Shown in pieces: positions 11,039-49,900 of a DNA stretch of 64,000 nt (position 1 is the stretch's first letter; each line of letters opens with the position of its first letter). The DNA is taken from the IMG/VR virus record IMGVR_UViG_3300035070_002626, positions 235,911 through 299,910 of that record; one strand, 5' to 3'. Made by a program: the position numbers and the translations under genes. The notes below the pieces were generated by a model. That model saw nothing but the letters and a program-made list of their open reading frames with translations. It did no database searches and was not told where the DNA came from.

Positions 11039-12061
11039 TTATCCAAAATCTATATCTATAGGATCAATCCTTCCTGCACCTAGAACTGATCCTTTTGAGC
11101 AGTTTCCTATACAAATGTTATGACAGGTTTTTATACTATCAAAACTATTTTTAAGTTTAAATTTGTAAAAATCTGACTGTGCAATATCACTTATACTGTG
11201 AATATTCAAATTTATATCGTTGAGGTTGCCAATTATTTTTCTAAAAAGCCTATCAGACATTGTGTTTTTCCAAGTTGTTCCGGACGTCATACAGCACGGC
11301 AATACATACCCTTCATGATTTATGTACATATCCCCGTGTTGATTCCAGGAGCACTGAGGGCTTGTAAACTCGTTGATACTGTTTGCTACGCTGTGAGACT
11401 TAGTAACAAATTCTATTCCGTCTGCCATTTCTAAATCATACTGAAACTCCCCGTCGATATACACAGGCCAAATAGTAGTTCCAAAGAAATTTCTATTAGA
11501 GTATTGAACTTGAAAGTCTATAAATCCAAGATCTTTTGCCAATTGTCTAGCTTCCTCAATTTGATGTTGATTGTGTTTGAAAACTATGTATTTCCAAGTT
11601 GCATTTCCTCCGGCTGAAATAAAACTTTTTGCATTTTCAATAGTTTTTTCCCAGTTAGCATTTATTCTATAGATGTGATTTGTATCTTCTAATCCATCTA
11701 GTGCAAATACAACATGCACATTCTTATAGGCTGCTATCTCTGAAAACCACTTTTTATTGCGTATACTTCCATTAGTATTAATGTCAACCCGGTTGATGTC
11801 TTTAAAAAAGTCAACAAAATTTCCAATTTCAGGATTCATTACTGGATCGCCGTAATCGCCTTCAAACTTCATATATTTTAAGTTAGGCAAATACTTTAAA
11901 TCGAAATTTTTTGAAAAATTATCAAAACTTAAATGCCCCGGAGTAAGATTTTTATCTAAAAATCCATGTTCGTCAAATCTAGGACATTGTGGGCAGTGCA
12001 AGTTGCAAAAACTAGATGATTCGATTGTTAGTTGTTTAATTTTATTTAAATCTAAGAACAT
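11039..12061 (-). CDS. Radical SAM protein with C-terminal SPASM/twitch-like domain
   Basis: CNLHCPQC (CxxxCxxC), GDYGDP, INTNGS, ALDGL motifs; C-terminal C...YINHEGYVLPCC...CHNICIGNC. Confidence 0.9.
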   Translation of the reverse strand: MFLDLNKIKQLTIESSSFCNLHCPQCPRFDEHGFLDKNLTPGHLSFDNFSKNFDLKYLPNLKYMKFEGDYGDPVMNPEIGNFVDFFKDINRVDINTNGSIRNKKWFSEIAAYKNVHVVFALDGLEDTNHIYRINANWEKTIENAKSFISAGGNATWKYIVFKHNQHQIEEARQLAKDLGFIDFQVQYSNRNFFGTTIWPVYIDGEFQYDLEMADGIEFVTKSHSVANSINEFTSPQCSWNQHGDMYINHEGYVLPCCMTSGTTWKNTMSDRLFRKIIGNLNDINLNIHSISDIAQSDFYKFKLKNSFDSIKTCHNICIGNCSKGSVLGAGRIDPIDIDFG

Positions 12062-14264: not shown

Positions 14265-16442
14265 TCACCCTCGACGGGTTGCATTTAGTATTTCCTGGCT
14301 GGTGTTGTTAGCACGTTGCATAGCAGTTACAAGTTCAGTTAATTTTTCAATGGTTAGATCCGACACTTCTTTTCTTGCTAGACTATCTGCATGCTGGCTT
14401 GCCAATTGATTGTTTGCTACTTTGAGATTTTCATTTAATACATCTGACAAATTGCTGCTGTTTTGTAACGTGCCGGCTGGGCCTGCTGTTGAAGGTACAG
14501 CATCTGATGTTCCTGGTGGAGCATATTTTTTTCTACTTTCTTCAAGTAGTTTTAATAAATCACTATTGTTTCCGTAATCTGGTGCTGCACTTGTTGGCGA
14601 AGTACCGTCACCTCCAGCTGGCATTGTTCCACTATCGCCACCAACAAATCTTCCAAAAAACATCTTTTTGATGCTTTCCCATGTCTCTGCGTTTTGTTTT
14701 CTAGAGTTTTCAAGTCTTTCTTGAATTTGTTGTTGCGCTATCTCTCTTTCTTCTGGACTCATACCTGTAAAATCTACAATTCCAGTACCAGATTCTGGCA
14801 TTATTTGTTCAGTAACTGCTGACTTTAATCCTCCTACACCGCCTTCGGAAAATATTTGTAGCATTTTAAGCATTTCGGTATTTGATTTTTGTACTATTTC
14901 GGCAAATTGTTTAACTGCACTAGCTGCTGGGCCCATAAGCTCTTTGGCCATTTTATCAGCTTCAATTGCTGCTCTTTGTAAAGCAACCTGTGCAGAAATT
15001 AAGTCAGCAGTTGTAGTATCCGTTGCTGTTGTTAAACTATCTTGTGATGTTTTTAATTTTTCTAAGTCGTCAGCTGTTAAATTAGCACGTTGGGACACAT
15101 TAAACATACCTTCAAACACTGCATCCAATGGTGTGCCAAGCCCAACTAGTCTAGCAATTCCTGCTGATCCTCCTAGAGAATCAAATCTATTGTTAATGCC
15201 TTGCATGATTAATGCTGTTGCATCAAGATCACTTATAGTACCTGCACGTAGTGCAGCAACCGCAGCAACACCTTCTTGCCCAGCTGCAAGAACAAACCCT
15301 TGTGCAGCTTCGGTACCGAGGTTGCCTGCCATTGCATCACGCAAACCATCAGCAATTTCTTTACTTGCAACAGTTTCAATAGCTGCTGATGTGGTTTGCA
15401 TGGCTAGTGCAGCTCGACGACCTTCGTCGCCGCCTAGTCTTTCTTGGATATCAGCAGCGGCACCCATTAAACGTATGTTTCGTGTTTGTGCATCCATTAT
15501 GGCTTGTTGATCGTCGATACTTCTACCAGTTATCCTCGAAAGAGTGGACAGTTTACGAATGTATTCTTCGCTGCCTTGTGCAAGTGCCCTTGCTGACATT
15601 GTTTCAACTCTACCAGTTCTTGCTTGTAACAACAAATATTTTGTTGTTAGTTCATTTTGTTTTTCGGCGCCCACACCCAAAGCTATCAAGCCTTGTCTAA
15701 ATGGTTCCATGTCTGCTGAGACTCGAGAAAATCTCTCAATACCTTCGCTTGCATCGCCAAACGCAAATGCAAGACCTTCAGCACCTTTGGACGCTACAGC
15801 ACTAAACTGTGTAAAACTAAGTCCAGCATCAATACTTTGATTCATTAGCTCAGTTAATCCGCTAGCAGTTAACCCGCCAACTTGCCCTACTGTGCGAAAT
15901 GCTTCACTTGCACGTTGTACTTCGGCTGTTACTTGCTGGCCTACTGTGGTAAGGATGTCAGCAACTGCTTCAGTAATTGCAGCGGCAAACTTGCCCACTG
16001 CATTGATTGCGCCTCCGATAACGCCGCCAACAACAGGAATACCGTCAGCAAGCCCGCCTAGTGCTTCACCAGCTACTCCTGCTAGTTTTCCTGTTGTTTT
16101 TAGTGCCGAGCCAGCTAGGTTTATCGATGGGTTCAAGCTGGTAAAGTCTTCCCTACTTTGCCTAACTGCACTAGCTGCTTCTGCAAAAGACGATCCGGCC
16201 TTAACAGCGCCAACTGCCATTTTACCTACAGCGGCAGTTCCTTTGCCGACTGAATTAGCAAACGACTCTTGGGAGGATATTATTGCTTTGTACTTGTTTT
16301 GAACATTGCTTAACTGGCTGTTGATTTTATTCCATTGAGAACTGCCTACTTGCTGACTGTTAGCCAGTTGCAACATAGACTGTTGCAATCGAGAGATTTC
16401 ATCATTCAATCTCTGTAGGTCTTGATCATCAAAATCTGCCAT
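14265..16442 (-). CDS. Tape-measure-like protein (about 725 aa)
   Basis: A/G-rich helical protein; start moved to ATG 16442 (MADFDDQDL) because the track start 16550 lies beyond the TAAATA box at 16486-16491 and overlaps the divergent gene. Confidence 0.7.
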   Translation of the reverse strand: MADFDDQDLQRLNDEISRLQQSMLQLANSQQVGSSQWNKINSQLSNVQNKYKAIISSQESFANSVGKGTAAVGKMAVGAVKAGSSFAEAASAVRQSREDFTSLNPSINLAGSALKTTGKLAGVAGEALGGLADGIPVVGGVIGGAINAVGKFAAAITEAVADILTTVGQQVTAEVQRASEAFRTVGQVGGLTASGLTELMNQSIDAGLSFTQFSAVASKGAEGLAFAFGDASEGIERFSRVSADMEPFRQGLIALGVGAEKQNELTTKYLLLQARTGRVETMSARALAQGSEEYIRKLSTLSRITGRSIDDQQAIMDAQTRNIRLMGAAADIQERLGGDEGRRAALAMQTTSAAIETVASKEIADGLRDAMAGNLGTEAAQGFVLAAGQEGVAAVAALRAGTISDLDATALIMQGINNRFDSLGGSAGIARLVGLGTPLDAVFEGMFNVSQRANLTADDLEKLKTSQDSLTTATDTTTADLISAQVALQRAAIEADKMAKELMGPAASAVKQFAEIVQKSNTEMLKMLQIFSEGGVGGLKSAVTEQIMPESGTGIVDFTGMSPEEREIAQQQIQERLENSRKQNAETWESIKKMFFGRFVGGDSGTMPAGGDGTSPTSAAPDYGNNSDLLKLLEESRKKYAPPGTSDAVPSTAGPAGTLQNSSNLSDVLNENLKVANNQLASQHADSLARKEVSDLTIEKLTELVTAMQRANNTSQEILNATRRG

Positions 16443-16505
16443 TAAATTCTTACCCGTTTTTACGCTGTATAAGTACAGTATCATATATTTATGGTAGGAA
16501 AAAAC
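16443..16505. promoter_or_regulatory. Divergent, converging late promoter pair
   Basis: TATAAGTA (+, 16468-16475) and TAAATA (-, 16486-16491) in the 63-bp gap between two divergent tail genes. Confidence 0.5.
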
Positions 16506-17351
16506 ATGGATCACAACAACCCAAACCCACTTGCAAAACACTTTAGGCAACCTGCAATTTATGTCACGTTGCCAAGCAATGGGGTGTACTACGACGAAAA
16601 TATTCTAGTAATGCCAGAGAATAAAGAAATTCCAATTTACCCAATGACAGCACTAGATGAAATTGCATATAGAACTGCTGACGCATTGTTCAACGGCGCT
16701 GCTATTGCTAATGTAATAAAAAGTTGCATCCCTGCTTTTGTAGACACTTGGCAGGTCAGCACACTTGATTTGGATACGTTGTTAATTGCTATAAGAATTG
16801 CAAGTTACGGACACGAAATGGAATTTACCAGCAAGTGTCCAAAGTGCAGCGAAACCAATGAGTTTGGCATTGACTTGAGAAGCATTATGGATCGAATCAA
16901 GACTCCAGATTTTTCTCAACCGGTTGTCAACGGAGACATTGAAATACATTTTAGACCGTTGACGTACACAGAACAAAATCGCAACAACATGTTGCAGTTC
17001 CAAGATCAAAAAATGTTGGAAGCATTACCTGATGCTGACCTTGATGAAGCTGAAAAGCTTAGATTGTTAACTGAAGCATTCCAAAGTCTCAGCGAGCTTA
17101 CTGTAAATGCAATCAGTGACAGTATCAGCATGATCAAAGCAGGCGATGATATTGTAGTAGACAAGGAACACATTACAGAATATATTAAAAACTGCGAATC
17201 TAAAGTTTTTTCAAAAGTACGCAAAAAAATTGAAGAAATTAAAAAACTAGGCGAAATTGACCCTCTTAACATTACTTGCGCCGATTGCAAGCACCAATAC
17301 GAAACGCCGTTTACTATGAATGTTGCAAATTTTTTCGAATCAGGCTCTTAA
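16506..17351 (+). CDS. Baseplate hub/tail assembly chaperone, gp26/gp51-like (G-type product)
   Basis: NPLAKHFRQP..YVTLPSNG N-terminus, CPKC and CADC Zn motifs, ends NFFESGS*; SD AGGA favours ATG 16506. Confidence 0.8.
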   Translation: MDHNNPNPLAKHFRQPAIYVTLPSNGVYYDENILVMPENKEIPIYPMTALDEIAYRTADALFNGAAIANVIKSCIPAFVDTWQVSTLDLDTLLIAIRIASYGHEMEFTSKCPKCSETNEFGIDLRSIMDRIKTPDFSQPVVNGDIEIHFRPLTYTEQNRNNMLQFQDQKMLEALPDADLDEAEKLRLLTEAFQSLSELTVNAISDSISMIKAGDDIVVDKEHITEYIKNCESKVFSKVRKKIEEIKKLGEIDPLNITCADCKHQYETPFTMNVANFFESGS

Positions 17352-17566
17352 CATCAGCTCCAGACGAGATTGAAGCAATCGTCGAGAAGATGGAAAAAGA
17401 AGTTAAGGGCCTAAAAGAGGATATGATGAAGATATGCTGGTACATGCGTGGCGGTATTAGCTACTCTGAAATCACACAGATGAGTGGTCCAGAACGAGAC
17501 ATCCTGGGAAGCATCATCAAGGGCAACTTGGAAACAGCAAAGAAAACAGGAAGAGACTTTTGGTAA
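17327..17566 (+). CDS. -1 frame extension of the preceding gene (GT-type domain), or a 58-aa ORF from ATG 17390
   Basis: Open -1 frame entered at slippery A-AAT-TTT-TTC; ICWYMRGGISYSEITQMSGPERDIL resembles C-terminal tail-chaperone domains. Confidence 0.7.
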   Translation, partial: KFFRIRLLTSAPDEIEAIVEKMEKEVKGLKEDMMKICWYMRGGISYSEITQMSGPERDILGSIIKGNLETAKKTGRDFW

Positions 17567-18063
17567 TCGATGAAGTAAAAGCCAACATCGAAGAATGGTT
17601 GATCAACTTTCTTGAAGTTCCACATCCTGCATTAGGCAATTGGTCACCATGCCCGTATGCTAGAAAAGCACGACTAGCCAACAAATACAGTGTGCGCATT
17701 GGCACTTCTCTAGCACAAGACATGATAAATGTTGCCGAAGAAGGCATGGGCAACCAAGATGTGTACATTTATGTGTACAACCCTGATGATTACGATCCTG
17801 AAGAATTTGAAGACACAATTGATAATGTCAACGAAGAAACACTAGTACCTATTGACATGCTAGCACTGTCAGACCATCCAGGTGTTCCTGAAGTAGTTAA
17901 TGGTGTGAAATTCAATCACGGAAAGTATGCACTAGCACTAGTACAAAGTCGCAGCAAGTTACACAGTCATGCAAAGATATTAGGTAAAAAAGGTTTCTAC
18001 AACGGCTGGGACGAAGAGTATCTTACTGGTCTATTTTCAAATCGTGAAGATCCACGACTTTAG
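17560..18063 (+). CDS. DUF1415-like protein
   Basis: WLINFLE...WSPCPYARKA resembles the DUF1415 xCPFA motif; TTG start uncertain. Confidence 0.55.
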   Translation: MVIDEVKANIEEWLINFLEVPHPALGNWSPCPYARKARLANKYSVRIGTSLAQDMINVAEEGMGNQDVYIYVYNPDDYDPEEFEDTIDNVNEETLVPIDMLALSDHPGVPEVVNGVKFNHGKYALALVQSRSKLHSHAKILGKKGFYNGWDEEYLTGLFSNREDPRL

Positions 18064-18709
18064 AATTTAACAGCTTGGTGTCTCTCTTGCACAACCACAC
18101 ATAGTGATCAACATCAGTGCTCCATTGTTGTCCCGTCCACCACTCAAATCCGTCAACTCGGCTTTTGTAAGTGCATATCTTCTCATATCCACTTCCCATG
18201 TACACATGCGAATACCCAGATTGTTTAGCCCAGGCAATTTCGTGATGCATTGTGCGTTCGCCTAAACGCAAATGCGGCTCATTATAGTCCCACGCAAATA
18301 ATGCTGTTTCAATACTGTTGGGACTGTATCTACGTAACTTACTCCATGCAACCAGCTCAGCATCGTGGTGATACTGAACATAGATATCCCAACTGAGTTG
18401 GTCATCAAGAGTGTACATTTTCTTAAAGCCTTTTTTCAAACAGTAGGCACTGTACACATGATCCATTTCGCTTGTAGAACTGTCAGTGATTTGGTAATTG
18501 TTTATTAGACTATAATCAGTGTTAGCAACATTTACTCTGGTACTACGACTTTGATACCAAATTTTTTCACCGTTGTCTACTGTTAATAACCATCCTTGAG
18601 CCAGCGCCTCATCGTGTTCACTGATGTCAACATCAACTAATTTTGGTATATTGTAGTTTATATCAGCTTGGCTCAGTGTGCCAAAAACATTATCGAATAC
18701 TATTTTCAT
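18023..18709 (-). CDS. Bpt/ATE1-like aminoacyl-tRNA-protein transferase
   Basis: C-terminal LRLGERTMHHEIAWAKQSGYSHVYMGSGYEKICTYKSRV fits the ATE_C pattern (SLG...I.WA...G..Y.YLGY....YK); N-terminal LAQGW matches the ATE_N L..GW/R motif. Confidence 0.7.
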   Translation of the reverse strand: MKIVFDNVFGTLSQADINYNIPKLVDVDISEHDEALAQGWLLTVDNGEKIWYQSRSTRVNVANTDYSLINNYQITDSSTSEMDHVYSAYCLKKGFKKMYTLDDQLSWDIYVQYHHDAELVAWSKLRRYSPNSIETALFAWDYNEPHLRLGERTMHHEIAWAKQSGYSHVYMGSGYEKICTYKSRVDGFEWWTGQQWSTDVDHYVWLCKRDTKLLNSKVVDLHDLKIDQ

Positions 18710-18740
18710 TACTAACTATATATAGAAATAAGGAAACCCA

Positions 18741-19064
18741 ATGGACATTTACACTATCTACTCTGACGTCAATGAAGGCGTTAATGCACACGAATTTGTA
18801 ACTAAAATGAGTGCGTTCTTAGATGAACTACCTACATTGCACAGCTATCGCATCACTAGAATGAAACTTGGATTTCGTAGTATGGATTTGCCAGAGTTTC
18901 GAATTGACATGGAATTTAAAAACATGCAAGATCTCGACGATGCAATGAAGCATGTAGTTACGGACACAAATGACATTGAAGTTAAGCACCATGCATTCAA
19001 TCAACTGGTTGATGTGGAAACTATACAACATTTTCTGTATAGAGACTTCCCAGACCAGTACTAA
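18741..19064 (+). CDS. DUF6614-like small alpha/beta protein
   Basis: YRITRMKLGFRSMDLPEFRIDMEF motif; AAGGA SD. Confidence 0.6.
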   Translation: MDIYTIYSDVNEGVNAHEFVTKMSAFLDELPTLHSYRITRMKLGFRSMDLPEFRIDMEFKNMQDLDDAMKHVVTDTNDIEVKHHAFNQLVDVETIQHFLYRDFPDQY

Positions 19065-19885
19065 TGCGCATCCTGCTGTTAAATGATACTTCTAAATATC
19101 ACAGCGGATGCAAACAGGTAATTAAAAACCTTAAATTACAAATGCAACCACATACCGCTGTGGTTAGCATTCCAGTGACTGTACCTTATATACAATACAA
19201 CGACTGGGATAACATTGATGCTGTTGTTGTTAACGGCGAAGGTACTATGCATAACAATCGCCAAGGTGCAGTTAGCTTACTAAACTTTGTAAACTTAGCC
19301 CAACAACAAAATAAACCCACAGTGCTGCTGAATTCAATTTGGCAGAACATGGACACTAGTTGGAAAAGTGTAACTGATAATTTGCAGCAATGGAGTGTAA
19401 GAGATGTGTATAGCCAACAACACGCTCAACACGATTTTGGAAGAACTCCAGACTTGTGCCCAGACATTAGTTATATCAATTGCCCAGATGTGTCAACTGT
19501 TGAAACACAACACAACATCACACTAGGGCAATATGCATTTGACAGTGTACACAACCACACCAAACACACGCAACGAATAAACATATTCAAACAATCATGG
19601 CATGATGTAGTTAATCAGTTGCGCAACAGCAATCTATGTGTTACTGGACGCTTTCATGAGGTTATGGCATGTATCTGTGCAGAAACACCATTTGTTGCAG
19701 TTGAAGGTAACAGTTGGAAAATGCAAGCACTCATTGCAAGTGCTGGTGCAGATATACCTGTACTCAATGATTTTCCAACAGACTTACAAGATGTTGAGCA
19801 TTTTTCCAGAACATACCATTTAGAATATGCTAAAGTATTTAAGTGGCATAAGCAAACAATATCAAAGTTTTCTTTAACATTATAA
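19064..19885 (+). CDS. Polysaccharide pyruvyltransferase-like protein
   Basis: VVNGEGTMH, WSVRDVYS, CPD and VTGRFHEVMACI..ETPF motifs; TAATG translational coupling. Confidence 0.75.
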   Translation: MRILLLNDTSKYHSGCKQVIKNLKLQMQPHTAVVSIPVTVPYIQYNDWDNIDAVVVNGEGTMHNNRQGAVSLLNFVNLAQQQNKPTVLLNSIWQNMDTSWKSVTDNLQQWSVRDVYSQQHAQHDFGRTPDLCPDISYINCPDVSTVETQHNITLGQYAFDSVHNHTKHTQRINIFKQSWHDVVNQLRNSNLCVTGRFHEVMACICAETPFVAVEGNSWKMQALIASAGADIPVLNDFPTDLQDVEHFSRTYHLEYAKVFKWHKQTISKFSLTL

Positions 19886-25766: not shown

Positions 25767-26681
25767 TTATTTGGTTTTAGTTGCTTTAGTTTCTGCAATA
25801 AAACGTTTTGATTCTGCTGAGTTGTTAAACTGTCGTGTCCAACTCGGATTCAAACCTGCATTTTCTAGAATATCATCACGAATGTTTTGATTTTTCTTTT
25901 CAATGTTTAGTACCCTAGTAAAACTGTTGGTAATAGCAGCGGTATAGTATGCAAACGGATTTTGCGATTTGCTTTCGTCAAATTGTAAACCAATTTGGCT
26001 GAGCTGCAACAATGCCTGTCCACGCATTTCTTCGTTGTAAGTATACCCACGCCAGTTTGAACGTGTAGCATAGCGTTCGCACAACTTGATAAACATGTGT
26101 GCTAGTTTGTCTGTCATTTTACCGTGATCTTTTGAGAAGTGACCATTGTCTAGTCCGCCGACCCAGTGACTTTTGCCCACAACATACGGAACTTTGTTAT
26201 CGTCGATCATGTAATGCCAAAATGGTGGAAAATTCAACTTTATATAGTTGAGATCTTGTTCTACTTCGGTCATAAGCTCTTGTAGTCCGTCGTCGGAATA
26301 ATCAACATCATCCATTTCTAGAATTTCTTCTAGTTTGGATTTCTTCTTTTCTTGTGCTTTGGTTAGCTTTTTTGGCACCATTGGGATGTGATCCCAGGTG
26401 GTAATGCGAAATACAAGCTCTTGGTTGCTGAGTTTTGTCGGATCAACTATTTCGCCTGTTTCTCGTTTGATGCGATCGGCTTTGTTACGCCGTGCTTCTG
26501 CAACCGTGCGCTGATTGATTTTGTCCACACTGGGCAAAATAATGTCATACTGCGCTTGACCCGGCTCTAGGTATGAACAATATGTGCTTTTACTTTTGTA
26601 AATTTCTTTGAGAATATCTCGGTTGTTAAGATAGTTAACTTTTTTAGGTTTTTTAACAGGTGTTTTTTTAGCTAATGCCAT
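25767..26681 (-). CDS. gp55: Late transcription sigma factor gp55 with internal insertion
   Basis: NYLNNRDILKEI N-terminus; NWRGYTYNEEM, FDESKSQNPFAYYT, EKK motifs; gp55-gp47-gp46 synteny. Confidence 0.9.
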   Translation of the reverse strand: MALAKKTPVKKPKKVNYLNNRDILKEIYKSKSTYCSYLEPGQAQYDIILPSVDKINQRTVAEARRNKADRIKRETGEIVDPTKLSNQELVFRITTWDHIPMVPKKLTKAQEKKKSKLEEILEMDDVDYSDDGLQELMTEVEQDLNYIKLNFPPFWHYMIDDNKVPYVVGKSHWVGGLDNGHFSKDHGKMTDKLAHMFIKLCERYATRSNWRGYTYNEEMRGQALLQLSQIGLQFDESKSQNPFAYYTAAITNSFTRVLNIEKKNQNIRDDILENAGLNPSWTRQFNNSAESKRFIAETKATKTK

Positions 26682-37928: not shown

Positions 37929-40900
37929 ATGGCTAAAAGAATTCGTTCTGAACAATTTCTTCCTGAGATTTTTCAAACACCTGCAAACAAGCAATTGTTG
38001 CGAACCACACTTGACCAACTGTATCAGAACCCAAAATTAAAACCAACCCAAGGTTATATTGGGCGAAAAATAGGCCCTGGTGTTACTGCTAGTGACAATT
38101 ACGTTCTTGAGCCAACCGAAACTAGAACAAACTACCAATTAGAACCCGGTGTTGTCCAACTTAAACCAAATACAAATCAAGTTGAAAATGCAATCACTTA
38201 TCCGGGTATCATTGACAGTTTGCAAATGCAAGGTGCTGATGTTTCTCGTCATGATAGATTGTTTAACAGTGAATATTACAGTTTTGATCCGTTTGTTGAT
38301 TATGACAAGTATGTCAATTTTGGGCAATATTATTGGGTTCCTCAAGGACCGGACAGTGTTGATGTCTTTTCGAATTCTATTCCTGTACAAGATGATTTTG
38401 ATGTAGAAGACACCGACGATGGATACACTTTTTCTGGTGAAGCAGGCACGTTGCCTACCCTATCAGTTGTGCGTGAAGGAAATTATACTTTTAATATTAA
38501 TAGCCCAGGCAACAATTTTTGGATACAAAGTGTTCCTGGGGTAAGCGGTGTATTACCATTTCAGCCAAATCAATCCTCAAGGCAGGTACTAGGTGTATCT
38601 AATAATGGCGAAGATTCTGGCACTGTTAGATTCGATGTACCTGCTAAAGATGCACAGAATTTTTACTTTACACTTTCAGACATCGGTGCAACTGATTTAA
38701 TCGACGGCACGCTAAAGTTCACTGACATTAACAATCAATATGTTGATGAATTCCTTGCTGTTAATGGCGGCATTGACGGGATTTCTGACTTAGAAAATCG
38801 TACATTGATCTTAACAACCACTAGTGATAGTGGATGGGAAATCCAAACGCCGTTTGACACAGAAGGAAACGGCTATGGCGAAGGCCCGTTTGATGACTCT
38901 ACTCCGATAGCAACTGATGCTGAAAGATACGTGCAATGGAGAATTAACTTTAACTATGCAGATCCTGATCGTCCATATATGGAGCTTACAGTTAATCAGA
39001 GTATTGCAAATCTGAGCAAAACAAACATTGAATATGGCACAAATAATGCCGGCGCTACTTGGTATAAAAATGCCGAAGGCACAATGGAGCGTCAGCCTCT
39101 TATTACTGCTAACTCAGATATTCTTTACTATCAAGATGGCAGCGACGATACTAATTTTGGTATTATACGCATTGTTGATCAAGAAAATGCTGCTGATTTA
39201 AACATATCCGAAATACTTGGGAAAACAAATTACACATCACCTAATGGTGTTGTGTTTACCAATGGGCTTAAAGTACGTTTCATTGGGACAGTTGTTCCTG
39301 CAAGTTACGCAAATAATGAATATTATGTTGAAGGAGTTGGGGCATCAATTGACTTGTTGTTAACAACTAACTTTGTCACTCCTGAGAAGTACACAGCTAG
39401 TAGCAGTGTGCCATATGACTCCAATCCATACGATGAAGGCAATTTTGATGAAACACTGAATGCACCAACTGCGCAAGATTATTTAACAGTCAACCGTGCA
39501 AGCATAGACCGCAACGCCTGGAGTCGCAGCAACAGATGGTTCCATATTGATGTATTGGATGCCACAGCGACATACAACAACGTTCCGTTAACAATCAACA
39601 ATGACAACAGAGCCAAACGTCCTATCTTAGAGTTTAGAAAAAATCTAAAACTTTTCAATGCAGGTACAGAAGGCATTAATAGTATTGATATTATCGACTT
39701 TTCTGAAACAGATGCCTTTTCAAACATCAATGGTACAATTGGATATTCAATTGATGGGTATAGCTTGATCTCAGGATCGCAGGTTATTTTTGCTGCTGAT
39801 GCAGACCCTGAAGTAAGAAATAAAATTTACGAAGTACAGTTTGTTGAACTAACTCCGGGTGCTACGCCGATTATTGATTTGCAACCAGCAAGCTTAACAA
39901 CTCCTGATGTGCCTGCTAACACTACCACAGTAGTAATGAGTGGAAACACACAACAAGGCAAGGCATATTGGTTTAACGGCACTAACTGGATAAGTGCACA
40001 GCAAAAAACCAAAGTTAATCAAGCACCGTTATTTGATATATTCGACAGTAATGGCTACAGCTACTCTGATATAACTGTCTATCCAAGTAGTACATTTGTA
40101 GGTACCAAGTTGTTCAGCTATGCAGTGGGCAGCGGCGCAACGGATACTATTATCGAACAGCCATTGAAATATTCAACTATTGCCAACGTTGGTGATATTG
40201 TTTTTGACAACAACTTGTATGTTGACACATTTGTATATGTTAGCGGCACAACTAGTGTTACAAAAATGATTGACGAAGGCACAGTTAGGCAGTATAATAC
40301 TAGGACTACATTTGATAAACTACTAGGCTGGCAAACATCATTTACTAAAACAGTTCAGCGACAAAGTTTTAGTTTTGAATATAATGCTGCACCGCTTGTG
40401 CTAGACGTACAAGTAATTGCTGATACGTCATTAATTCCTGTTAAAGTGTATGTTGAAGGACAGTTTGTTCTTCCAGAAGATTACACCTATGCAACGAATG
40501 TTGACAACACAACTACAATCACGTTTAACACAGATAAACAGCCGGTAACTGGCACAGTGATTGAAGTGCAAGTCATCAGTGACACTGAAAGCAGTGTTGC
40601 TTTTTATACCATACCAGTTAACCTTGAATCAAATGCACTAAATGAAAATAGTAGTGGATTTACACTAGGTACTGTGCGCAAGCATTATGAAAGTATTTGT
40701 CAAAATTTAGAAAACTTTTCTGGAAAGATACATGGTGCAAATAATGTTCGCGACCTTGGTAATGTTGTTCCATTTGGCGGCTTAATACTGCAACAAAGTG
40801 CTCCGTTGAGTATGATGACAAACTTTATCAATGGTAGAGATTTTGAGTTTTTTCGTGCACTGGAATTCAATGCAGTTGAATACAACAAAACAAAAAATAA

Positions 40901-43900
40901 GATTCTAAATTATGTTGCACAAAATGATTGGCAATCAAAAACAACTGCCGAAATATTAGATGATGCACTGGAAGCAATTAATGCTGGTAAAAATCAATTT
41001 AGCCCATTTTATTGGACTGATGCTATTCCGTCGGGTCCTATATTTGAGCTAACAACATACACAGTTAGTGCAATTACTACAAACGTGTTTGATACACTTT
41101 ATAGTTACAATATGTTTGCAGCAAATTATGCAGGTATATTAGTATACTATACACCAAAGAGCACTGGTGTTGAGACTATTTTAACCGGCAACGGGCATGA
41201 CTATACTGTAGCAGCAGACGGGCCTCGAATTACAATTAATACTGACAATGTTACATTAGCAACCGGTGATATTATTAGTATACGTGAATATAAATCAACA
41301 TCGGGCAGTTATGTACCGGCAACTCCGTCAATGATGGGTATGTATGAAATATTCAAACCAGAAAAATTCTTAGACAATACTTATGTTGAGCCGCAACAAG
41401 TTATTCGTGGCCATGACGGTAGTATAACAATTGCCTGGGACAATGGCGATTTTAGAAACGATGTATTGCTTGAGTTTGAAAATCGAGTGTATAACAACAT
41501 AAAAATTAGCGAAGAAAGCCGCAAGATGTTGCCCATTAAGGCAGCTGATGTTATTCCTGGACAATTCCGTACTACTGATTATTCAGCCGCTACAATTAAT
41601 AGTATGCTTTCTGTTAGCTTCTTGAGTTGGGCAGGCGGCAATCGTGTTCCATATAAAGATCAAGATTATATTCCGACCAATGAATTTACTTGGAATTATA
41701 GCAACAGTACCAATCGTTTGTCAGGTGATTCTTTATTAGGTGGCTGGAGAGCAATTTACTTCCAGCTATATGACACAGACAGTCCAGACACTCGTCCTTG
41801 GGAAATGCTAGGGTTGTCCGAAAAGCCGTCATGGTGGAACGATAGATACGGCCCTGCACCTTATACCTCAGGTAACTTGGTGCTATGGGAAGACCTAGCA
41901 GCAGGCCGTGTAGCAGATCCAATTGCACCTTATGTACGTAAAGACTATGTGCGCCCGGGCTTGTTAGATGTTATTCCGACAGACAGCCAAGGAAGACTAT
42001 TGTCGCCATTCGATAGTGTTGTTGGCAATTATGACCAAAACAGTTTTAAAAAATCTTGGGTTGTTGGTGATATGGGCCCAGCTGAAACGGCGTGGAAACG
42101 CAGTAGTTATTATCCTTTTGCAATACAAAGATTACTTGCACTAACTAAGCCAGCTGATTACTTTTCGTTGTATTCTGACAGAGATGCATGGGATTATAAT
42201 GCAGTCTTTGGGCAATATTTGTTGAACAACAGATTTAGATTAAATGCATCGCAAATCGGTATTTACGGTAATGGAACTATTAAAAACAGTTATATTAATT
42301 TTATTGTTGACTATAATAGAGTTACCGGGTTAGACAGTACTGCAATATTAACATCTAAATTGGCAAACATTGATATACGTTTGTGCTATAGAATGGCAGC
42401 GTTTAGTGATCAAAACTATCTAAAAATATTCAGTGAGAAGAGTTCACCAAACAGTCTGAATGCTAGTTTATTATTACCAGACGAAAGCTATCAACTGTTC
42501 CTTTATCAAAATCCAAGTTTTTCAGAAATACAATACAGTAGTGTTATTGTACAAAGAACCACAACAGGATACACTGTTAGTGGGTACTCGACTACAAAAC
42601 CATATTTCAGCATATTAGAAAGTGTGTCAAGCGGAAACTTTAACAGGATGACTGTGAATGGTGAAACATTCCGTGTTGCTAACACCTATTCTAAGAACGT
42701 AGTTACAGTACCATATGGTTACGAGTTTTCAAGTAAAAACGCAGTTGTTGACTTCTTGGTTAGTTATGGTAAACTACTTGAGTCACAAGGTATGGAGTTT
42801 GATACAGTTGAGAATACAGCAATTCTTAATTGGGAACAAATGGCACAAGAATTTTTATATTGGGCCGGCCAAGGCTGGATTGCAGGTAGTTTAATTAACT
42901 TGAACCCAGCTGCTAATATACTAAAATTGGAGCAGCCAAACAGCGTAGTCGAAAGTTTAAAAAACGAAAATATCAATGATATATTATTAGATCAAAACTA
43001 TGAACCATTGATGTCAAGCGAATATGCAGTTGAAAGACTTGACAACGAACTTAAATTGATCGGTCTTAACAATCAAACATTTAGCTATCTTAATGCAAGA
43101 TTTACCAGTTACGAACATATTATCGTATTTGACAATGTTAGTATCTTCAATGACCTCGTGTATGAACCAAAAACCGCAGCAAGACAAAGTCGCTTGCTGC
43201 TAAACGGATACACAGTGTATGACTGGAACGGTACACTTGATGCTCAAGGATTTATTCTCAATGAGGATAACATCGAGCCTTGGGTGCCCAACAAATCATA
43301 TACTAAAGGGCAAATTGTTCTTTATAAAAATAGATACTGGAGTGCAGTTGAATTACTGGCACCAACAGAAAAATTTGATTTTTCTAAATGGATAAAAAGC
43401 GATTACAATAAAATACAAAAAGGATTGTTGCCAAACCTTTCTAGTAAGGCAAGCGGATTGCAGGAAAACTATGATATCCACACTGCAAATCTTGAACAAG
43501 ATGCTACATTACTTGGATTAGGACTGATTGGATTTAGACCAAGACAGTACATGCAAAATCTAAACTTAGATGATATTTCACAAGCTGGGCTATACTCCCA
43601 ATTCTTGGGAACAAAGGGCACACTGCAAGCAGCTGAAATCTTTACTAGTGCTAACCTTGGTAAAGATCAAGCAGAATATGAAATATTCGAAAATTGGGCA
43701 ATACAGCGTGGACTATACGGTGCAAGTGCAAACCGTAGTTACTATGAATTGCAGCTTGACGAAAGCAAATTACTCGGAAACCCGACTACAATTGATGTTG
43801 TTAATGCTGGCGAAACAAGTAGCGCAGATCAATCAATATCGTTGAACAATATATGGAAACAAAGTTATAAAATTACTGATACAAACATATTGCCAACTAT

Positions 43901-46900
43901 AGATCAGATTCCCGCAGACGTGGGATTACCAAGTGCTGGTTATGTAAATTACGATGATGTTGATATTAAAGTTTTTAACTACAGTGACTTGACAAATATT
44001 ATTCTTAACATGGAAAAAGTTACGGTTGGCACCAACGTGTGGGTAGCCAAAGACAATAGATATGATTGGAATATCTATAGAACCAATGTAGTTAATGCTA
44101 GTGTTGTTCGAGTATTTGATAATCTAGACGGTACATGTACAGTAACTTTTGATGTTAACCACGGATTGTCAGCTGCTGACAGATTGATTGTTAAGTATTT
44201 CAATAGCAATGTTGATGGCGCTTATATTGTTAAGTCAGTGCCAAGCCTAAAAACTTTAGTAATTGATTTAATGCTACTAGGAAACACAACCGACATAACT
44301 GGCGACGGTCGTGCGTTTGTTCTAGAAAGTGTTCGTGTTAAGCAACCAGCTGATATTTCAAGCCTGAGCTTTGTTGATGAGATTCAACCTACCAATGAAG
44401 TTTGGGTCGACAACAGCGGCAATGATACATGGGAAGTATTAGAAAAAATTAATCCATTTGGTACACCAAGTGATTTAGACGGACCTGTTGCTCAAATAAA
44501 TGCACGTTTCGGTACATCTATTGCGCAAGGATTACGCAATCAAGGACTGGTTATTGGTGCACCTGGATACAATTCTAGTGTTGGTGCAATAACTGTTTAC
44601 AATAAAGGCGAGGGTGTATACGTAGAAACTGCTACTATATCTCCTGCAACCACTGGATTTAATGAATTTGGTAGTAGTTTAGCAGTAGGCGGATTTGATT
44701 GGGCAATTGTAGGCGCACCTGCTAGTGACAGTAACAAAGGTTATGCAGTTGCAGTTAACAGAAACCCAAACAACGGTAACTACAGACAATCTCAAATCTT
44801 TGTTGGCGCCAGTGGTGCATCAGAGCAAGGATACGGAGTAGCTATTAGCAACGACGAACGCTGGATGTATATCAGCTCGCCGGCCGACAACAACATCGAC
44901 GCATACAATTTAGTTAATGTGCAAAGCCAAAGTGTGGAATACACAGGTGATGCTGTTACTACCAGCTTTGCAATCACTCCAGCAATTGTGGTTAGCGGTA
45001 CACTATTAACAGCACAAACACAAATTGGCGTAACTGTTAATAACATTCCTAAATTAGCCGGAGTTGACTGGAACTTAGAATCTGTTAGTGGTACAACAAA
45101 TGTGAAGTTTACTACAGCACTAAACAACGGCGACGATTTACGAATCACAAGACTACTGAGTTACATAGACAATACAGTAGTTGCTGAGACTACATTTGAC
45201 ACCAGTATGTTGTACACTGTAACCGACATTTATAGTTTTGCAGTCTATGTTAACAACGTATTACAGCGACCAGGCATTGATTATACGTTTGTTGGCAATG
45301 ATGTTGTGCTTTCTTCGCCAGCAACAGGAACAGTTTTTATTAATTCGCAATCTTACTGGAAACATGTTGACACATTCACTGTAGCTAGTGTAGTAGGCGG
45401 TGCAAGACTAGGGCAAAGTATTTCAACAACCACCGACGGCCGCCAAATTATGATTGGCGCACCTGACGATACAGTTGGCTCAGACACATTGGCTGGGACA
45501 GTTCACGTTATGGATAGAAGTGTTGAGAGATTTCAAGTCACTGATGCAACAGTTGCTACCTATACTGTTACTGATACACCAAACGGTCCAGTAAGTGTTA
45601 CTGTCAATGGTAACTATTTAATACCAACTAACAACTTTAACAATCCGCAGTTTAGTGTTGCTGGCAATGTTGTTACAATTGGCACCACTGCTAATCCTGT
45701 AACGCTAAATGTTGGTGACATAATTGAAATTGAAACCAATAATTTTAGATTAATGCAAAGCATACAATCAACTACACCAGGGGCTAGCTATAGCTTTGGC
45801 AGCGTAGTTAAAAATTGCCCAACTAATTGTAGTTTATATATTGGTGTGCCAAACGATAGTGCAATTATGCCCGAAGCCGGCAGCGTTGAGCGTTGGGCAA
45901 ACCAAAGTAGATTGTTTGGAACTATAACAGGGACTGTTGCTAATCCGGTACTGTCTGTTGGTGATAGTATTCGTATTAATAATTATTATGTCACACTAAC
46001 TGGCACAACAGTTGCTTCGTTGGTCAACGACATTAATGGTGCCGATATTCCTAATGTACTCGCAGTTGCCGATGCTGGTAAATTACTACTTACATTGCAA
46101 AATGTAGCAGCCGGTGATGAATTTATTAAATTGCAAGTATTACCAGGTGTTGGGACAGCGTATGATGATCTTGGTATTGCCCAAATGGTGTTTGCACAAA
46201 AAATTACATCACCATTGGTACAAGCATATGGGCATTTTGGAACCAGTGCAAGCATTAGTAATAATGCATTAACACTAGTAGTTGGTGCACCAGATTCAAC
46301 TGCAATTATGGCAACAACTTTTGATACTGCAACCACCGACTTTGATTCAGATAGCACGCCGTTTAGTGATCCAGTTGCGCAATCCGGAGTTGCAATAACA
46401 TTTGATTTCTTAAATGCAGCAAATCCGAGTATTACAAACTTTGGAAAGTTTGTATACGGCCAACAGATATTTGACACAAGCATTAACAGTCTTGATAAAT
46501 TTGGAACAGCAGTTGATTATCGTGATGGTACATTGCTAGTAGGTGCACCAAATGATGACCTTGACGACAGCACAGATACCAACAGCGGCCGTACTATACA
46601 AATTATCAATGCCAAGAAAGAGCTTGCTTGGAAAGTAGTATACAAGCAAGAGCCGGTAGTTAACACTGCACTTCTAAACAGTGTATTCTTGTATGACAAG
46701 ATTAGTAGTAATGTTACTAATTACTTGGATTTCATTGATCCATTGAATGGAAAAATACTTGGATCAGCACAGGCTAATATTGATTATACTGGCGGAGTCG
46801 ACCCTGCTGCTTACAACACTGGCACAGTAAACAATTTCGGTTCGCAGTGGAACAGTAATCATCTTGGAGAAATGTGGTGGGATTTATCAACAGTTCGATT

Positions 46901-49900
46901 TATTGATTATCATCAAGACACAATTGAATACAAAGCCAGAAGATGGGGACAACTATTTGAAGGTTCCGTTGTAGATGTGTATCAGTGGACAGAAAACACA
47001 GTCCCGCCTAGCGAATATGCAGGTATTGGCGAAGTTTATAGTACCACAAGTTACACCATGACAAGTATGATCGACAGTGTAGGCACTTTTGTAACTTATT
47101 ATTACTATTGGGTTAAAGGTATTACAAGTGTAAGTCCAAGCAAAACGCTGAGTGCTGCTGGAGTTACACAGTATATTGCAAATCCACGTAGTAGTGGTAT
47201 TAGCTATGCAGCCGCACTATCGCCTAGCACAACAGCACTATACAATTGTAATAGTCTTATTAGTGCTAAAGATACAATTTTGCACATCGAGTTTGATAAA
47301 ATTGCAAACACCGACAACGTTCATGCTGAATATGACTTGATTACTGTTGGTAATCCTAGTAGTTTCTTAGGTGCTGGGCTTTATAGAAAGTTGCTTGATA
47401 GTTTCTGCGGCGAAGATACATTGGGCAACATAGTACCTGATGCGACATTGAGCATAGCAGACAAGTACGGAGTTAACTTCCGTCCAAGACAGAGTATGTT
47501 CAAAGATCGATTCCTTGCTCTTGAAAACTATCTATCACGAGCAAATAAAATCATGGCACTGTACCCTCTCACAGACAGCAAAAAGTTTGATTTGCTTAAT
47601 AGCGAAGAACCAGAGCCAACTAAAGTTAGTGGAGCTTGGGATAAACGAGTTGCAACATATGCAGAATTGACATACCAAGATCTACAGCAAGTACCAGTTG
47701 GTTACATATACCTAGTGGCAAGCGACAGCACACAGCAAGGCTTGTGGACAACTTATACAGTACAGGCAAATAAAACATTGTTGCTCAGCAGAGTACAGAC
47801 ATACGATACTAAACTTTATTGGAACTATGTTGACTGGGTAGCAGTAGGGTATGATGCATCGGTTAAGCCAACAACCGAAGTTGCAGTGTACAGCGACCTA
47901 CTTGCATTAACTCCGGTAAATGGTCAAGCAGTTAAAGTAACTGCAAATAGTTTCGGCAAAAGCGAAATATACCAATGGACTAGTGCTGCTGGTGAATGGG
48001 TGCGTGTGCAGCTTACAGACGGCACAGTTGCAATTAGCAATACTATCTGGGACTATGCAATTGGAAACTATGGTTTTGACACTGAGGTGTTTGATGCACA
48101 AAGATTTGATCAAGCACCAAACACTGAAACACGACAGATTCTTAAAGCTCTAAATGAAGAAATATTTACAACAGATTTAGAAATTTATCGCAATGAGCTG
48201 TTAATTCAAGTATTTGAATTTATTACAACAGAGCAGCTAGCACCAGATTGGCTGTTTAAAACTAGTTTGATTGATGTTTCTCATAAAATTCGTGATTTAC
48301 TTCCGTACCCAATTTACAAACGTGATAATCAAGATTTTGTTAGTGATTATATCGAAGAAGTTAAACCGTACCATGTCCAGATTCGCGAATTTAATTTACG
48401 TTACGAAGGAATTGACAGTTACAACGGCAGTGCTACTGATTTTGATGTGCCAGCATATTATGATGAGCTAAGACAAGGATTTATATCGCCTATCTTGGAC
48501 AACAACGTTGATAATCCGTCATCAGTGAGTAGCTTTCCTAGCACTGATCCAATTTGGCAAACTTGGCCATACAGCCAATGGTTTAACAATTATTTGCTAG
48601 AACTAACTAGTGTTACTGTACTAAACGGCGGCACAGGCTATACTGTTCCCCCGCAAGTTATTGTAACAGGCGATGCTACTACACAAGCAACTATGGAAGC
48701 AAAAGTTAACAGTGCTGGCAATGTGATTAGTATAAGTGTGCTCACACCTGGTAGTGGATATACAACTACTCCAATTATTACTATTTCCGGCGGAAATGGT
48801 GTTGGCGCAACCGCAATTGCAGTGCTTGCACCAAGCTTGATTCGAGATATTGTAACAACAATCAAATATGACAGAATTACTTATAATAGTCAAGTAGTTG
48901 ATTGGCAAGCAAATACAGTGTATACTGCAAATGAGCTTGTACGTTATCCTGTTCCTACTGTTGGCACAGTTAACACAGTGCAAGCAAAAGTTTATCAAGT
49001 AATTACAGATTTTACTAGTGCCTCAACATTTGATCCTGAAAATTTCACAGTAGTTGATCCAACTACACTTGACGGTGCCGACAGAACAATTGGCATGTAT
49101 ACACCGACTCCAAACCAGCCTGGGCGAGAACTAGCACAGTTGATGGCAGGTATTGATTACCCAGGTGTGCAAGTACAAGGACCCGACTTTGATCAAAACA
49201 CTGGCTTTGATGTAGGCAATTATGATGTTAATCCTTTTGACAACCTCGATTTTGGCCCTGAAGGGTTGCCAACATACAGCACAGACATCCTTGATGTTAT
49301 ATACGAAAGCTCGTTTGTTGATTCTTACTTGGGAATACGTGCAACTGATATTAATGTCGAGGGTGGCGAATTTATCGACACATATAGTTCTCATGCACCG
49401 GAAGAACTTGTTCCAGGAAGCGAGTTTGATACACTAGATCTTAAAGTATACACTCGCCCTGGCAGTGATTGGTCTAACAACGGTCACGGGTTTGATATCA
49501 AAGATATTAGTGTTGAGTATACAGGAGTTGGAACAACAGTTAGTTTTGCAAATCTTATGCAGCATCCTGTGGAACTTGAAATTTATAATGAACTTAGTGG
49601 TCAAAATGTAGATCCAAGTACCTACACCATTAACTGGGTTACCAAAGTAATTACATTTAACAGTGGAAACGTAGGAAATGTGTTTGACGTTCAAGTTTAC
49701 GGACTTGGCGGCGGATCACAACTCTATAAAGAAAGTTTTGTAGGCAGTACTATTACTAATGCAACACAGCGTATTAATGTAGCATACACAGAAATTGCCG
49801 AAATGGTTGTATTTGTAAATGGAGCACTGTTTACAAACTACACTTATGCAGCCAGCGGTAGTTTTGCAACAGATGTAACATTTAACACACAACCTACATC

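Follow-up and report, generated by a model that had tools for sequence, protein, structure and literature searches.

A conserved slippery site very probably joins a C-terminal extension to a gp26/gp51-family protein by -1 frameshifting in a large marine phage

A tail-baseplate assembly gene of a large marine phage carries a strictly conserved slippery site that very probably lets a fraction of the ribosomes slip back one base and add a 76-residue tail, so that a single gene would yield a short and a long protein, the pair that phage T4 encodes as two separate genes (26 and 51). The gene lies in a stretch of 64,000 nucleotides (hereafter the window) taken from the IMG/VR record IMGVR_UViG_3300035070_002626. 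The best reading of our comparative data is a programmed -1 ribosomal frameshift giving products of 281 and 353 aa (277 + 76), with the logic of lambda G/GT in an unrelated protein family. The slip itself, its efficiency and a role of the products as tail chaperones are inferred, in the absence of protein or ribosome data. No GenBank record listed here marks the locus as a frameshift, and we found no paper describing a frameshift in gp26/gp51, although subscription-only articles were not covered by our full-text searches. The elements of the locus and its neighbor are as follows.

16506-17351, plus strand: 0-frame ORF of 281 aa, the short product, with two CxxC pairs (C111/C114, C258/C261) and a C-terminal FF (276-277).
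17327-17333, plus strand: an in-phase heptamer A_AAT_TTT, overlapping the next one, clade-specific and not needed for the model.
17330-17336, plus strand: the conserved in-phase slippery heptamer T_TTT_TTC, with P-site codon TTT (17331-17333) and A-site codon TTC (17334-17336).
17336-17566, plus strand: the -1-frame extension, 76 codons (R..W) plus the stop at 17564-17566, appended after F277 in the predicted 353-aa long product.
17342-17412, plus strand: candidate stimulatory RNA stem-loop, in which the 5' arm (17342-17352) pairs with the 3' arm (17402-17412).
17349-17351, plus strand: 0-frame stop codon TAA, four codons after the slip site.
14268-16442, minus strand: divergently transcribed neighbor of 725 aa, Ala/Gly-rich, a tape-measure-like virion protein that is not part of the recoding cassette.

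The 0-frame ORF starts at ATG 16506 and belongs to the T4 gp26/gp51 family, as shown by its match to Pfam PF12322 (70 bits against a cut-off of 24.5, E 3e-19, residues 64-278) and to the "baseplate hub" profile phrog_150 (E 4e-25, positions 4-233 of 282). The four cysteines and the FF are invariant in two of our alignments, the first of which includes T4 gp26, and the AF2 model of the protein has a pLDDT of 86. A blastn search of the region against GenBank phages found no match, and relatives were reachable only at the protein level. The -1 frame is open from 17270 to the stop at 17564-17566 and reads ..NFF-RIRLLTSAPDEI..WYMRGGISYSEITQMS..ERDIL.. across the slip site. Its first ATG, at 17390, is preceded only by GAGAAG, so that there is no good Shine-Dalgarno sequence, and a promoter and terminator scan gave nothing above chance between the ORFs. 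These features confirm what a sequence-only reading of the window had described, with two corrections, and they support its inference of a G/GT-type -1 frameshift giving products of about 281 and 353 aa. First, of the two heptamers, only T_TTT_TTC is conserved: A_AAT_TTT occurs only in the near relatives of the window, where the preceding codon is AAT, other lineages having CAT, AGT, TCT, GAT, CGT, TAT or GCT at this position. Second, the location next to the tape measure gene holds only in part. The neighbor is transcribed divergently, and it looks like a tape measure only by language-model features (hits to TMP_3, PhageMin_Tail and TMP_2 clusters, scores 0.92-0.93), by an annotation note on the RaK2 orthologue and by its length variation from 695 to 863 aa among relatives. 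The orthologue of this neighbor was detected by MS in PA5oct, and the same order of portal, large protein and gp26-like gene is seen in 121Q, PA5oct, CBB, RaK2 and in lineage L190.

The conservation of the heptamer is far more than chance. T_TTT_TTY was present and in phase in 88/88 loci of the jumbo/marine clade (25-100% amino acid identity) and in 82/82 loci of the cyanophage-type clade, which include S-WAM1, OLIVR5 and LPCS28. Of these 170 related loci that could be scored, 169 have TTTTTTC and 1 has TTTTTTT. The residue before FF varies (N, S, H, T, D, R, Y, A), yet its codon always ends in T. As FF is itself a conserved protein motif, present even in T4 gp26, part of the T-richness is forced by the protein sequence. 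Nevertheless, in 73 unique ORFs of the window's marine clade the three codons that make up the heptamer end in T, T, C, F276 being TTT in 73/73 and F277 being TTC in 73/73, whereas four other invariant Phe columns in the same genes mix TTT and TTC (55:18, 22:48, 15:47, 30:14). Also, the heptamer is absent from most lineages that encode the long form as a separate gene: T4, KIT01 and lineage L191 have TTC TTT, the Acinetobacter phage has TTT GTT, and the Aeromonas phage and L190 have no FF.

The -1 frame is open for 72-81 codons (jumbo type) or 64-70 codons (cyanophage type) in every complete locus. The peptide is conserved from the first codon after the slip site and aligns without gaps from this site in 41 phages (FRxRLLxSxPxEI..WYMRGG..ER), while its first ATG lies at index 3 to 38, or is absent in PA5oct. 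In several loci the -1 frame is closed by a stop immediately or only a few codons upstream of the heptamer. In the 88 jumbo/marine loci, the 0-frame stop falls one codon (14 loci) or four codons (71 loci) after FF. Interestingly, the 0-frame codon after FF varies (E, A, V, G, D) but nearly always starts with G, which keeps CGN = Arg in the -1 frame. The extension is predicted to be a helical hairpin (AF2 pLDDT 87, helices 10-39 and 52-72).

A candidate stimulatory structure was found at the canonical spacing. In the window, an 11-bp stem starts 5 nt after the heptamer (MFE -28.7 kcal/mol, z = -4.0), and it is kept in 12/12 near relatives with one compensatory G-C to A-U double change. Over 75 distinct sequences, a helix starting 3-7 nt after the heptamer is the best one in most cases, with a mean length of 7.9 bp against 5.6 bp in shuffles, the 3' arm lying at lineage-specific positions. 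A stem at this position was found across clades, including Atu_ph07, Phosso, PA5oct, XacN1 and cyanophages. However, the mean z is only about -2, and the stem is weak or absent in some lineages (L032, L034, L036, L038, L041 and some cyanophage clades).

Natural in-frame equivalents of the predicted long product also exist. T4 gp51 is composed of a PF12322 domain (residues 1-201, E 4e-52) and a C-terminal domain that matches phrog_634, and T4 gp26 is its short paralogue (BLASTP E 2e-6), ending ..FFELL just where the short product ends. The window ORF covers positions 4-233 of phrog_150, and the cyanophage -1 peptide covers positions 231-276 of the same profile. The cyanophage, OLIVR5 and LPCS28 extensions match phrog_634 (E 4e-31, 3e-8 and 6e-11). 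For the window's own extension, homology to T4 gp51 is only moderately supported. It has no direct hit to phrog_634, and Pfam, PHROGs and PDB sequence searches gave nothing meaningful, the only hit being phrog_18291, of unknown function. Profile comparison with full-length T4 gp51 as a single sequence returned only a spurious low-probability hit to gp51 residues 36-64, while comparison with an alignment of gp51 C-termini by hhalign gave E 2.6e-4 and a probability of 42% over 31 columns. The motifs LLxxxPDEI and YSxxxIxxMxxxER are shared in one of our alignments. Around the junction, gp51 reads ..VFKLLVNPDEI..YSLNSISKMIPAER.., against FFRIRLLTSAPDEI..SYSEITQMSGPER.. in the window, whose extension has a longer first helix (about 14 extra residues). 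Identity between the window's protein and the T4 proteins is only about 23%. Finally, a profile of the extension found 457 proteins, 172 of them at E <= 1e-10, and about 24 metagenomic clusters of 319-351-aa proteins carry the window-type extension in frame at the C-terminus. All 8 of the 8 clusters tested have PF12322 in the N-terminal part, and in the three contigs examined each such long form follows a short PF12322 paralogue, one contig having the same gene order as the window.

Taken together, we consider with high confidence that, when tRNA-Phe occupies UUU (P site) and UUC (A site) of U_UUU_UUC, a fraction of ribosomes slip back one nucleotide, probably helped by the RNA stem, then read CGA instead of GAA and carry on for 76 codons in the -1 frame. 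The resulting long form would share residues 1-277 with the short form and end in a helical domain, probably of gp51 type, at a ratio set by slip efficiency. T4 has two neighboring, divergently transcribed paralogous genes without a slippery site (G TTC TTT G), and some jumbo-phage lineages use tandem short and long paralogues, so that three alternative encodings of the same pair exist.

Two other explanations appear unlikely, to a similar degree. The downstream ORF could be a separate small protein, made by independent initiation or by termination-reinitiation, the T-run being only the footprint of the FF motif. GenBank annotates it in this way, as two CDS ("baseplate hub subunit" and "baseplate hub assembly catalyst"), in many of the 582 records. 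Atu_ph07, Phosso and 121Q have ATGA or TAATG overlaps, these three phages and about two thirds of cyanophage-type loci have an ATG within 3-6 codons of the slip site (5-6 codons in 54 of 79 cyanophage-type loci), and FF is conserved even in T4 gp26, which does not frameshift; separate initiation or reinitiation is possible in such loci. However, the window and its clade have no ATG, GTG or TTG between the slip site and codon 20, although these 20 residues are among the best conserved, PA5oct has no start codon at all, and the start position is not conserved. Moreover, this explanation accounts neither for the T before FF in 170/170 loci, nor for the fixed TTT-TTC, nor for the stem at 5-7 nt, nor for the covalent link of the homologous domain to PF12322 in T4 gp51 and in about 24 other clusters.

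Alternatively, the same fusion protein could be made by transcriptional slippage, the RNA polymerase adding one U in the T6 run. The site is a homopolymer run, one inserted U gives exactly the same protein (..NFFR..), and slippage at A/T runs is known in bacteria and phages (Atkins 2016 review, PMC5009743). Against this, six T is probably short for efficient slippage by bacterial RNA polymerase, and the run has not been lengthened in the 170 loci although synonymous TTT-TTT-TTT would allow it, only XacN1 having seven. A conserved RNA stem 5-7 nt downstream is the hallmark of ribosomal frameshifting and not of polymerase slippage. Contigs from four RNA libraries cross the site with six T and no indel, although contigs drop minority variants and cannot exclude a minority T7 species, and these libraries may contain DNA. 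The assembly graph breaks exactly at 17326-17345 with raised depth, which we attribute to many strains sharing the conserved slip region and not to slippage. As for the absence of any recoding, one two-gene lineage (L189) keeps TCT TTT TTC at the end of its short gene although its -1 frame closes after two codons, but this possibility is effectively refuted by the conservation of a -1 peptide of 64-81 codons across lineages that share only 25% identity in the main protein.

The closest known systems are the lambda G/GT and P2 E/E+E' tail assembly chaperones made by -1 programmed frameshift (Levin 1993; Xu, Hendrix and Duda 2004, as cited in PMC5009743). In these as here, a slippery heptamer lies a few codons before the stop of the first ORF, and the two products share their N-terminal part. 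However, the heptamer is U_UUU_UUC rather than G_GGA_AAG, and the protein is roughly twice as long as gpG, has a 4-Cys motif and is not homologous to gpG or to any Phage_TAC family, its only Pfam hit being PF12322. Foldseek searches of the PDB with both AF2 models (best E 0.08) and a VIA-align search with the ORF model matched only generic helical hairpins. This is an analogy and not family membership. In the window, the tape-measure-like gene is not downstream, and the tail-tube family PF06841 (T4 gp19) was not found in the 300-kb record. By contrast, a tube-family gene (phrog_45) lies upstream in S-WAM1 and LPCS28, the upstream gene of OLIVR5 is annotated as a tail-tube initiator, and a large protein of unknown family (610-1039 aa) lies downstream in all three, which mirrors the lambda order V, G/T, H.

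In T4, gp26 and gp51 are required to build the central hub that holds the tape measure, and gp51 is absent from virions. Both are listed as "hub assembly chaperones" in PMC3004832, although that review also notes genetic evidence that the hub contains gp26. By analogy with lambda G/GT, the pair most likely acts as a non-structural assembly chaperone for the hub/tape-measure complex, the extension providing an extra binding surface. The role as a tail-assembly chaperone, which the sequence-only reading had also inferred, rests on T4 genetics and on gene order. A complex prediction with the tape-measure-like neighbor gave no answer, which is evidence neither for nor against binding. The PA5oct orthologue of the gene carries no MS tag, whereas that of CBB is labeled "structural protein".

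More tentatively, it remains possible, though we do not hold it as the likelier view, that the gp26/gp51 pair is the long-missing tape-measure chaperone of T4-like contractile-tail phages, and that a short:long ratio set by frameshifting is the ancestral and still dominant way of encoding it, found in cyanomyophages, pelagimyophages, KVP40-like vibriophages, rhizobiophages and RaK2-like jumbo phages. The two genes of T4 would then be a derived resolution of that frameshift, the G/GT principle would have arisen (or persisted) in a family unrelated to gpG, and tail assembly by a frameshift-made chaperone pair would be found in essentially all long-tailed phage groups.

To our knowledge, no frameshifted chaperone pair has been reported in this phage group, and its presence would be a case of convergence on ratio-setting by frameshift. 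The model links two poorly understood T4 genes as the short and long forms of one functional pair. Also, this core gene of the T4-like phages, among the most abundant viruses in the ocean, appears to be mis-annotated in hundreds of genomes, as two genes or with the second ORF missing. The sequence-only reading was right that gp26 and gp51 are usually annotated as separate genes, the -1 ORF being the "small gp51" of cyanomyophages and marine vibriophages (Sullivan et al., 2010, PMC3037559). The latter lies directly after gp26 with the same heptamer, but is of a different sequence subtype (FFRIALMH..NFALM..HKYSL..PWER) from that of the window (FFRIRLL..WYMRGG). Sullivan et al. (2010) noted that cyanophage gp51, only about 20% of the length of T4 gp51, lacks its first ~200 residues, and under our model gp26 supplies those residues through the frameshift.

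The ORF under study, hereafter ORF1, encodes 281 aa and ends with GCA AAT TTT TTC GAA TCA GGC TCT TAA. The elements of this locus are as follows:
16506 to 17351, + strand: ORF1, from ATG 16506 to the stop codon TAA at 17349-17351
17327-17333, + strand: heptamer A_AAT_TTT of the X_XXY_YYZ type, in phase with ORF1
17330-17336, + strand: overlapping heptamer T_TTT_TTC of the same type, also in phase with ORF1
17270 to 17566, + strand: open -1 frame, with its stop at 17564-17566
17390, + strand: first ATG in the -1 frame
17342-17352 with 17402-17412, + strand: arms of a candidate 11-bp RNA stem

After a slip, the ribosome would read ..N-F-F-R-I-R-L-L-T-S-A-P-D-E-I.. and add 76 residues, the long product then being 353 aa. 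No convincing Shine-Dalgarno sequence precedes the ATG at 17390, and no promoter-like site above chance was found between the ORFs. The statements of fact made in the sequence-only reading, which had described the end of this ORF, its two overlapping in-phase heptamers and an open -1 frame without a good Shine-Dalgarno sequence, are correct.

ORF1 matches Pfam PF12322 'T4_baseplate' (E 3e-19) and phrog_150 'baseplate hub' (profile positions 4-233 of 282). The window is the last 64 kb of a 299,910-bp viral record and carries T4-like genes, namely portal, prohead protease and major head protein, as well as gp46/47-like nucleases, a late sigma factor and a gp5-like hub/lysozyme. Interestingly, a radical SAM + SPASM domain protein (11039-12061, minus strand; Pfam E 3e-9 and 9e-6) is inserted between the portal gene and the prohead protease/scaffold genes, inside the head module, which is an unusual position for such an enzyme. 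The closest cultured relatives of ORF1 (25-31% identity) are the RaK2-like jumbo phages Atu_ph07, Phosso, 121Q/PBECO4, RaK2, GAP32, CBB, PA5oct, XacN1 and SCTP-2, and hundreds of closer relatives occur in marine metagenomes. The gene order is the same in 121Q, PA5oct, CBB, RaK2 and the window, with the portal, then a virion protein of about 720-800 aa on one strand, then the gp26-like gene on the other strand.

In order to examine the conservation of the slippery site, we extracted 88 loci of this clade (the window, 9 GenBank jumbo phages and 78 IMG/VR contigs) at 25-100% identity. In all 88 the protein ends with FF and the heptamer is in phase, being TTTTTTC in 87 loci and TTTTTTT in XacN1. 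The residue before FF differs (N, S, H, T, D, R, Y, A), but its codon always ends in T. As a control, we considered 73 unique ORFs of the window's marine clade (the window and its IMG/VR relatives), in which four other invariant Phe positions use TTT:TTC at 55:18, 22:48, 15:47 and 30:14 and the third positions of neighbouring codons vary freely, whereas the three heptamer codons end in T, T, C in 73/73. Also, the 0-frame residue after FF varies (E, A, V, G, D), but its codon almost always starts with G, which preserves CGN = Arg in the -1 frame. After the slip site, selection therefore acts on the -1 frame and not on the 0 frame.

In all 84 complete loci the -1 frame stays open for 72-81 codons from the heptamer. 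The translated extensions align without gaps from the very first residue, with the consensus FRxRLLxSxPxEI...WYMRGG..Y....LS..ER..I...I. Depending on the lineage, the first ATG lies at index 3, 4, 8, 14, 16, 20, 21, 32, 34 or 38, and PA5oct has no start codon at all. In several loci a -1-frame stop lies immediately upstream of the heptamer or only a few codons before it. The annotation of this ORF in GenBank is inconsistent, as the start positions vary (a later ATG in CBB and Atu_ph07, and codon 6 of the extension, which reads Leu, in Vibrio phage 2.275.O) and RaK2 and PA5oct do not annotate it at all. This is the classic signature of a trans-frame extension rather than of an independent gene.

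The 104 nt after the heptamer fold at -28.7 kcal/mol, with z = -4.0 against dinucleotide shuffles, and the 11-bp stem starts after a 5-nt spacer. RNAalifold on 12 near relatives keeps this stem, with one G-C to A-U double change and several single-side changes that keep pairing, between U-G and U-A and between A-U and G-U. Across 75 distinct sequences, the best helix whose 5' arm starts 3-8 nt after the heptamer averages 7.9 bp against 5.6 bp in shuffles, and the mean z of the fold is -2.1. The 5' arm is fixed in place, while the 3' arm sits about 66, 75 or 87-90 nt downstream in different clades, about 38 nt downstream in PA5oct and about 59 nt in XacN1. Some lineages lack an obvious partner, and the structure is therefore a frequent companion of the site, not a universal one. 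Atu_ph07 and Phosso, which share only 30% identity with the window protein, have 10-bp stems at the same offset.

Among distant T4-type relatives of gp26, three have the same heptamer followed by a -1 ORF of about 60-70 codons: cyanophage S-WAM1 (TCT TTT TTC GCG TAG), Agrobacterium phage OLIVR5 (GAT TTT TTC TCC TCC TGA) and Cronobacter phage LPCS28 (GAT TTT TTC GAT TAA). In OLIVR5 part of that ORF is annotated 'baseplate hub assembly catalyst', which is the name of T4 gp51, and the three extensions match phrog_634, which bears that same name, at E 4e-31, 3e-8 and 6e-11, respectively. T4 gp51 itself (249 aa) has two parts, a PF12322 domain (residues 1-201, E 4e-52) and a C-terminal domain matching phrog_634. 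The whole of gp51 covers phrog_150 positions 13-280, whereas ORF1 of the window covers 4-233 of that profile and the cyanophage extension covers 231-276. The two pieces therefore abut on a single profile. T4 gp51 reads ..DVFKLLVNPDEI..NYSLNSISKMIPAER.. across the point where the window reads ..NFF/RIRLLTSAPDEI..ISYSEITQMSGPER... A profile-profile comparison of the jumbo-type extension with gp51 C-termini plus small gp51s gives E 2.6e-4 and probability 42% over 31 columns, which is suggestive rather than conclusive for the window's own subtype. T4 gp26 and gp51 are paralogues (BLASTP E 2e-6). T4 gp26 ends with ..EFFELL, encoded by G TTC TTT G, which is not slippery, and gene 25 follows it. Also, the T4 record (locus L004) annotates at 2303-2590 an internal in-frame start product, 26', within gene 26. 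T4 therefore makes more than one product from this locus by another route.

The same arrangement is widespread. Of the cyanophage-type IMG/VR loci, 79 of 79 carry T_TTT_TTC, a stop one codon later (TTC GNN TAG) and a -1 ORF of 64-70 codons. A tblastn search with the cyanophage extension finds it directly after gp26 in 582 GenBank phage records, including Synechococcus and Prochlorococcus phages, KVP40-like vibriophages, Aeromonas CC2, Rhizobium and Sinorhizobium phages, Pelagibacter phage HTVC008M, pf16 and others, and the matches start at the FF. The jumbo type adds 96 records. In the records listed, the region is covered by two separate CDS or by the gp26 CDS alone, and no listed feature is marked as a frameshift. 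Under the frameshift model, the residues missing from the cyanophage small gp51 (Sullivan et al., 2010; PMC3037559) are supplied from gp26.

In-frame fusions of the window's own subtype also exist. An HMM of the extension, searched against 1.84 billion representative proteins, found 457 hits, most of which are short ORFs of 40-100 aa with ragged N-termini. However, about 24 clusters are proteins of 319-351 aa with the extension at their C-terminus. All 8 that we tested have PF12322 in the N-terminal part, and their junction reads ..S-F-R-N-K-I-L.., with a single Phe. In each of the three whose contigs were inspected, a short PF12322 paralogue (281-297 aa) lies immediately upstream of the long one. 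One of these contigs is 327 kb and has exactly the window's gene order, with the portal, a 783-aa protein, then short and long on the other strand. The short genes there end without FF, or with GAC TTC TTT CAG, or, in L189 (a Logan contig of SRR5080639, positions 1665-1704), with TCT TTT TTC AAT GAC TAA, where the -1 frame closes after two codons. The latter may be a relic of a former frameshift site, which would bear on which encoding is ancestral. Thus, the same short-plus-long pair is encoded in three ways, as one gene plus the inferred frameshift, as tandem paralogues, and as the divergent paralogues of T4. Wherever the long form has its own gene, the constraint on the heptamer is mostly gone.

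The best explanation of these data, which we hold with high confidence although it is inferred from sequence comparison, is -1 ribosomal frameshifting on U_UUU_UUC with a downstream stem. Independent initiation or reinitiation cannot be excluded in lineages that have an ATG at the junction, but it does not account for the start-less conserved N-terminus of the extension in the window clade and in PA5oct, for the synonymous fixation of the heptamer, or for the covalent long forms found elsewhere. Transcriptional slippage would give an identical protein. Three observations argue against it, although none excludes a minor contribution: the run is only six T and is not lengthened, apart from the TTTTTTT of XacN1, the conserved stem is a ribosomal-frameshift feature, and contigs from four RNA libraries cross the site without an indel. 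Assembled contigs from these metatranscriptome runs (X16 and X17, over 17307-17355) end or start exactly at the slip region (17326-17345), where word depth rises 3- to 6-fold, and the likely reason is that many co-occurring strains share this invariant stretch while their flanks differ.

Concerning function, T4 gp26 and gp51 are listed as 'hub assembly chaperones', and gp51 is required for baseplate assembly but is absent from the particle (PMC3004832). The divergent neighbour of ORF1 in the window (14268-16442, minus strand, 725 aa) resembles tape measure proteins by language-model features. Its length varies from 695 to 863 aa among phages whose gp26-like proteins are 64-96% identical, and if it is the tail ruler, these relatives should differ in tail length by roughly 25 nm. 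In S-WAM1 and LPCS28 the gp26/gp51 gene directly follows a tail-tube-family gene (phrog_45), and in OLIVR5 the upstream gene is annotated as a tail-tube initiator. In all three a protein of 610-1039 aa and unknown family follows, directly in S-WAM1 and LPCS28 and after one small ORF in OLIVR5, an order which recalls lambda V, G/T, H. These points make a lambda-like chaperone role plausible. However, this role is not shown, as the AF2 models (pLDDT 86 and 87) have no solved structural relative, the one complex prediction gave no answer, and virion MS annotations of the orthologues disagree (absent in PA5oct, 'structural' in CBB).

The system, as inferred here, works like lambda G/GT and P2 E/E+E', but it is not a member of those families and belongs to the gp26/gp51 family. 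Outside paywalled literature, which was not covered, our full-text searches found no description of the frameshift. The recoding principle is known, whereas its occurrence in this protein family and phage group appears to be new. This has consequences for the annotation of many hundreds of phage genomes and for the interpretation of two classic T4 genes.

The 63-bp divergent intergenic region between the tape-measure-like gene and the gp26-like gene (16443-16505) contains TATAAGTA (16467-16474), one mismatch from TATAAATA, which is probably the T4 late-promoter motif, and a gp55-like late sigma factor is encoded at 25767-26681. Beyond ORF1, at 18023-19885, there are three neighbouring genes with cell-type enzyme domains, encoding an arginine-tRNA-protein transferase C-terminal-like protein (ATE_C, E 1e-5; 18023-18709, minus strand), a DUF6614 protein (18741-19064) and a polysaccharide pyruvyl transferase-like protein (19064-19885). 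Also, a single ORF of 4,506 aa (37929-51449, + strand), preceded by ORFs of 1,135, 848 and 938 aa, sits inside the structural gene block and probably encodes a giant virion or fibre protein.
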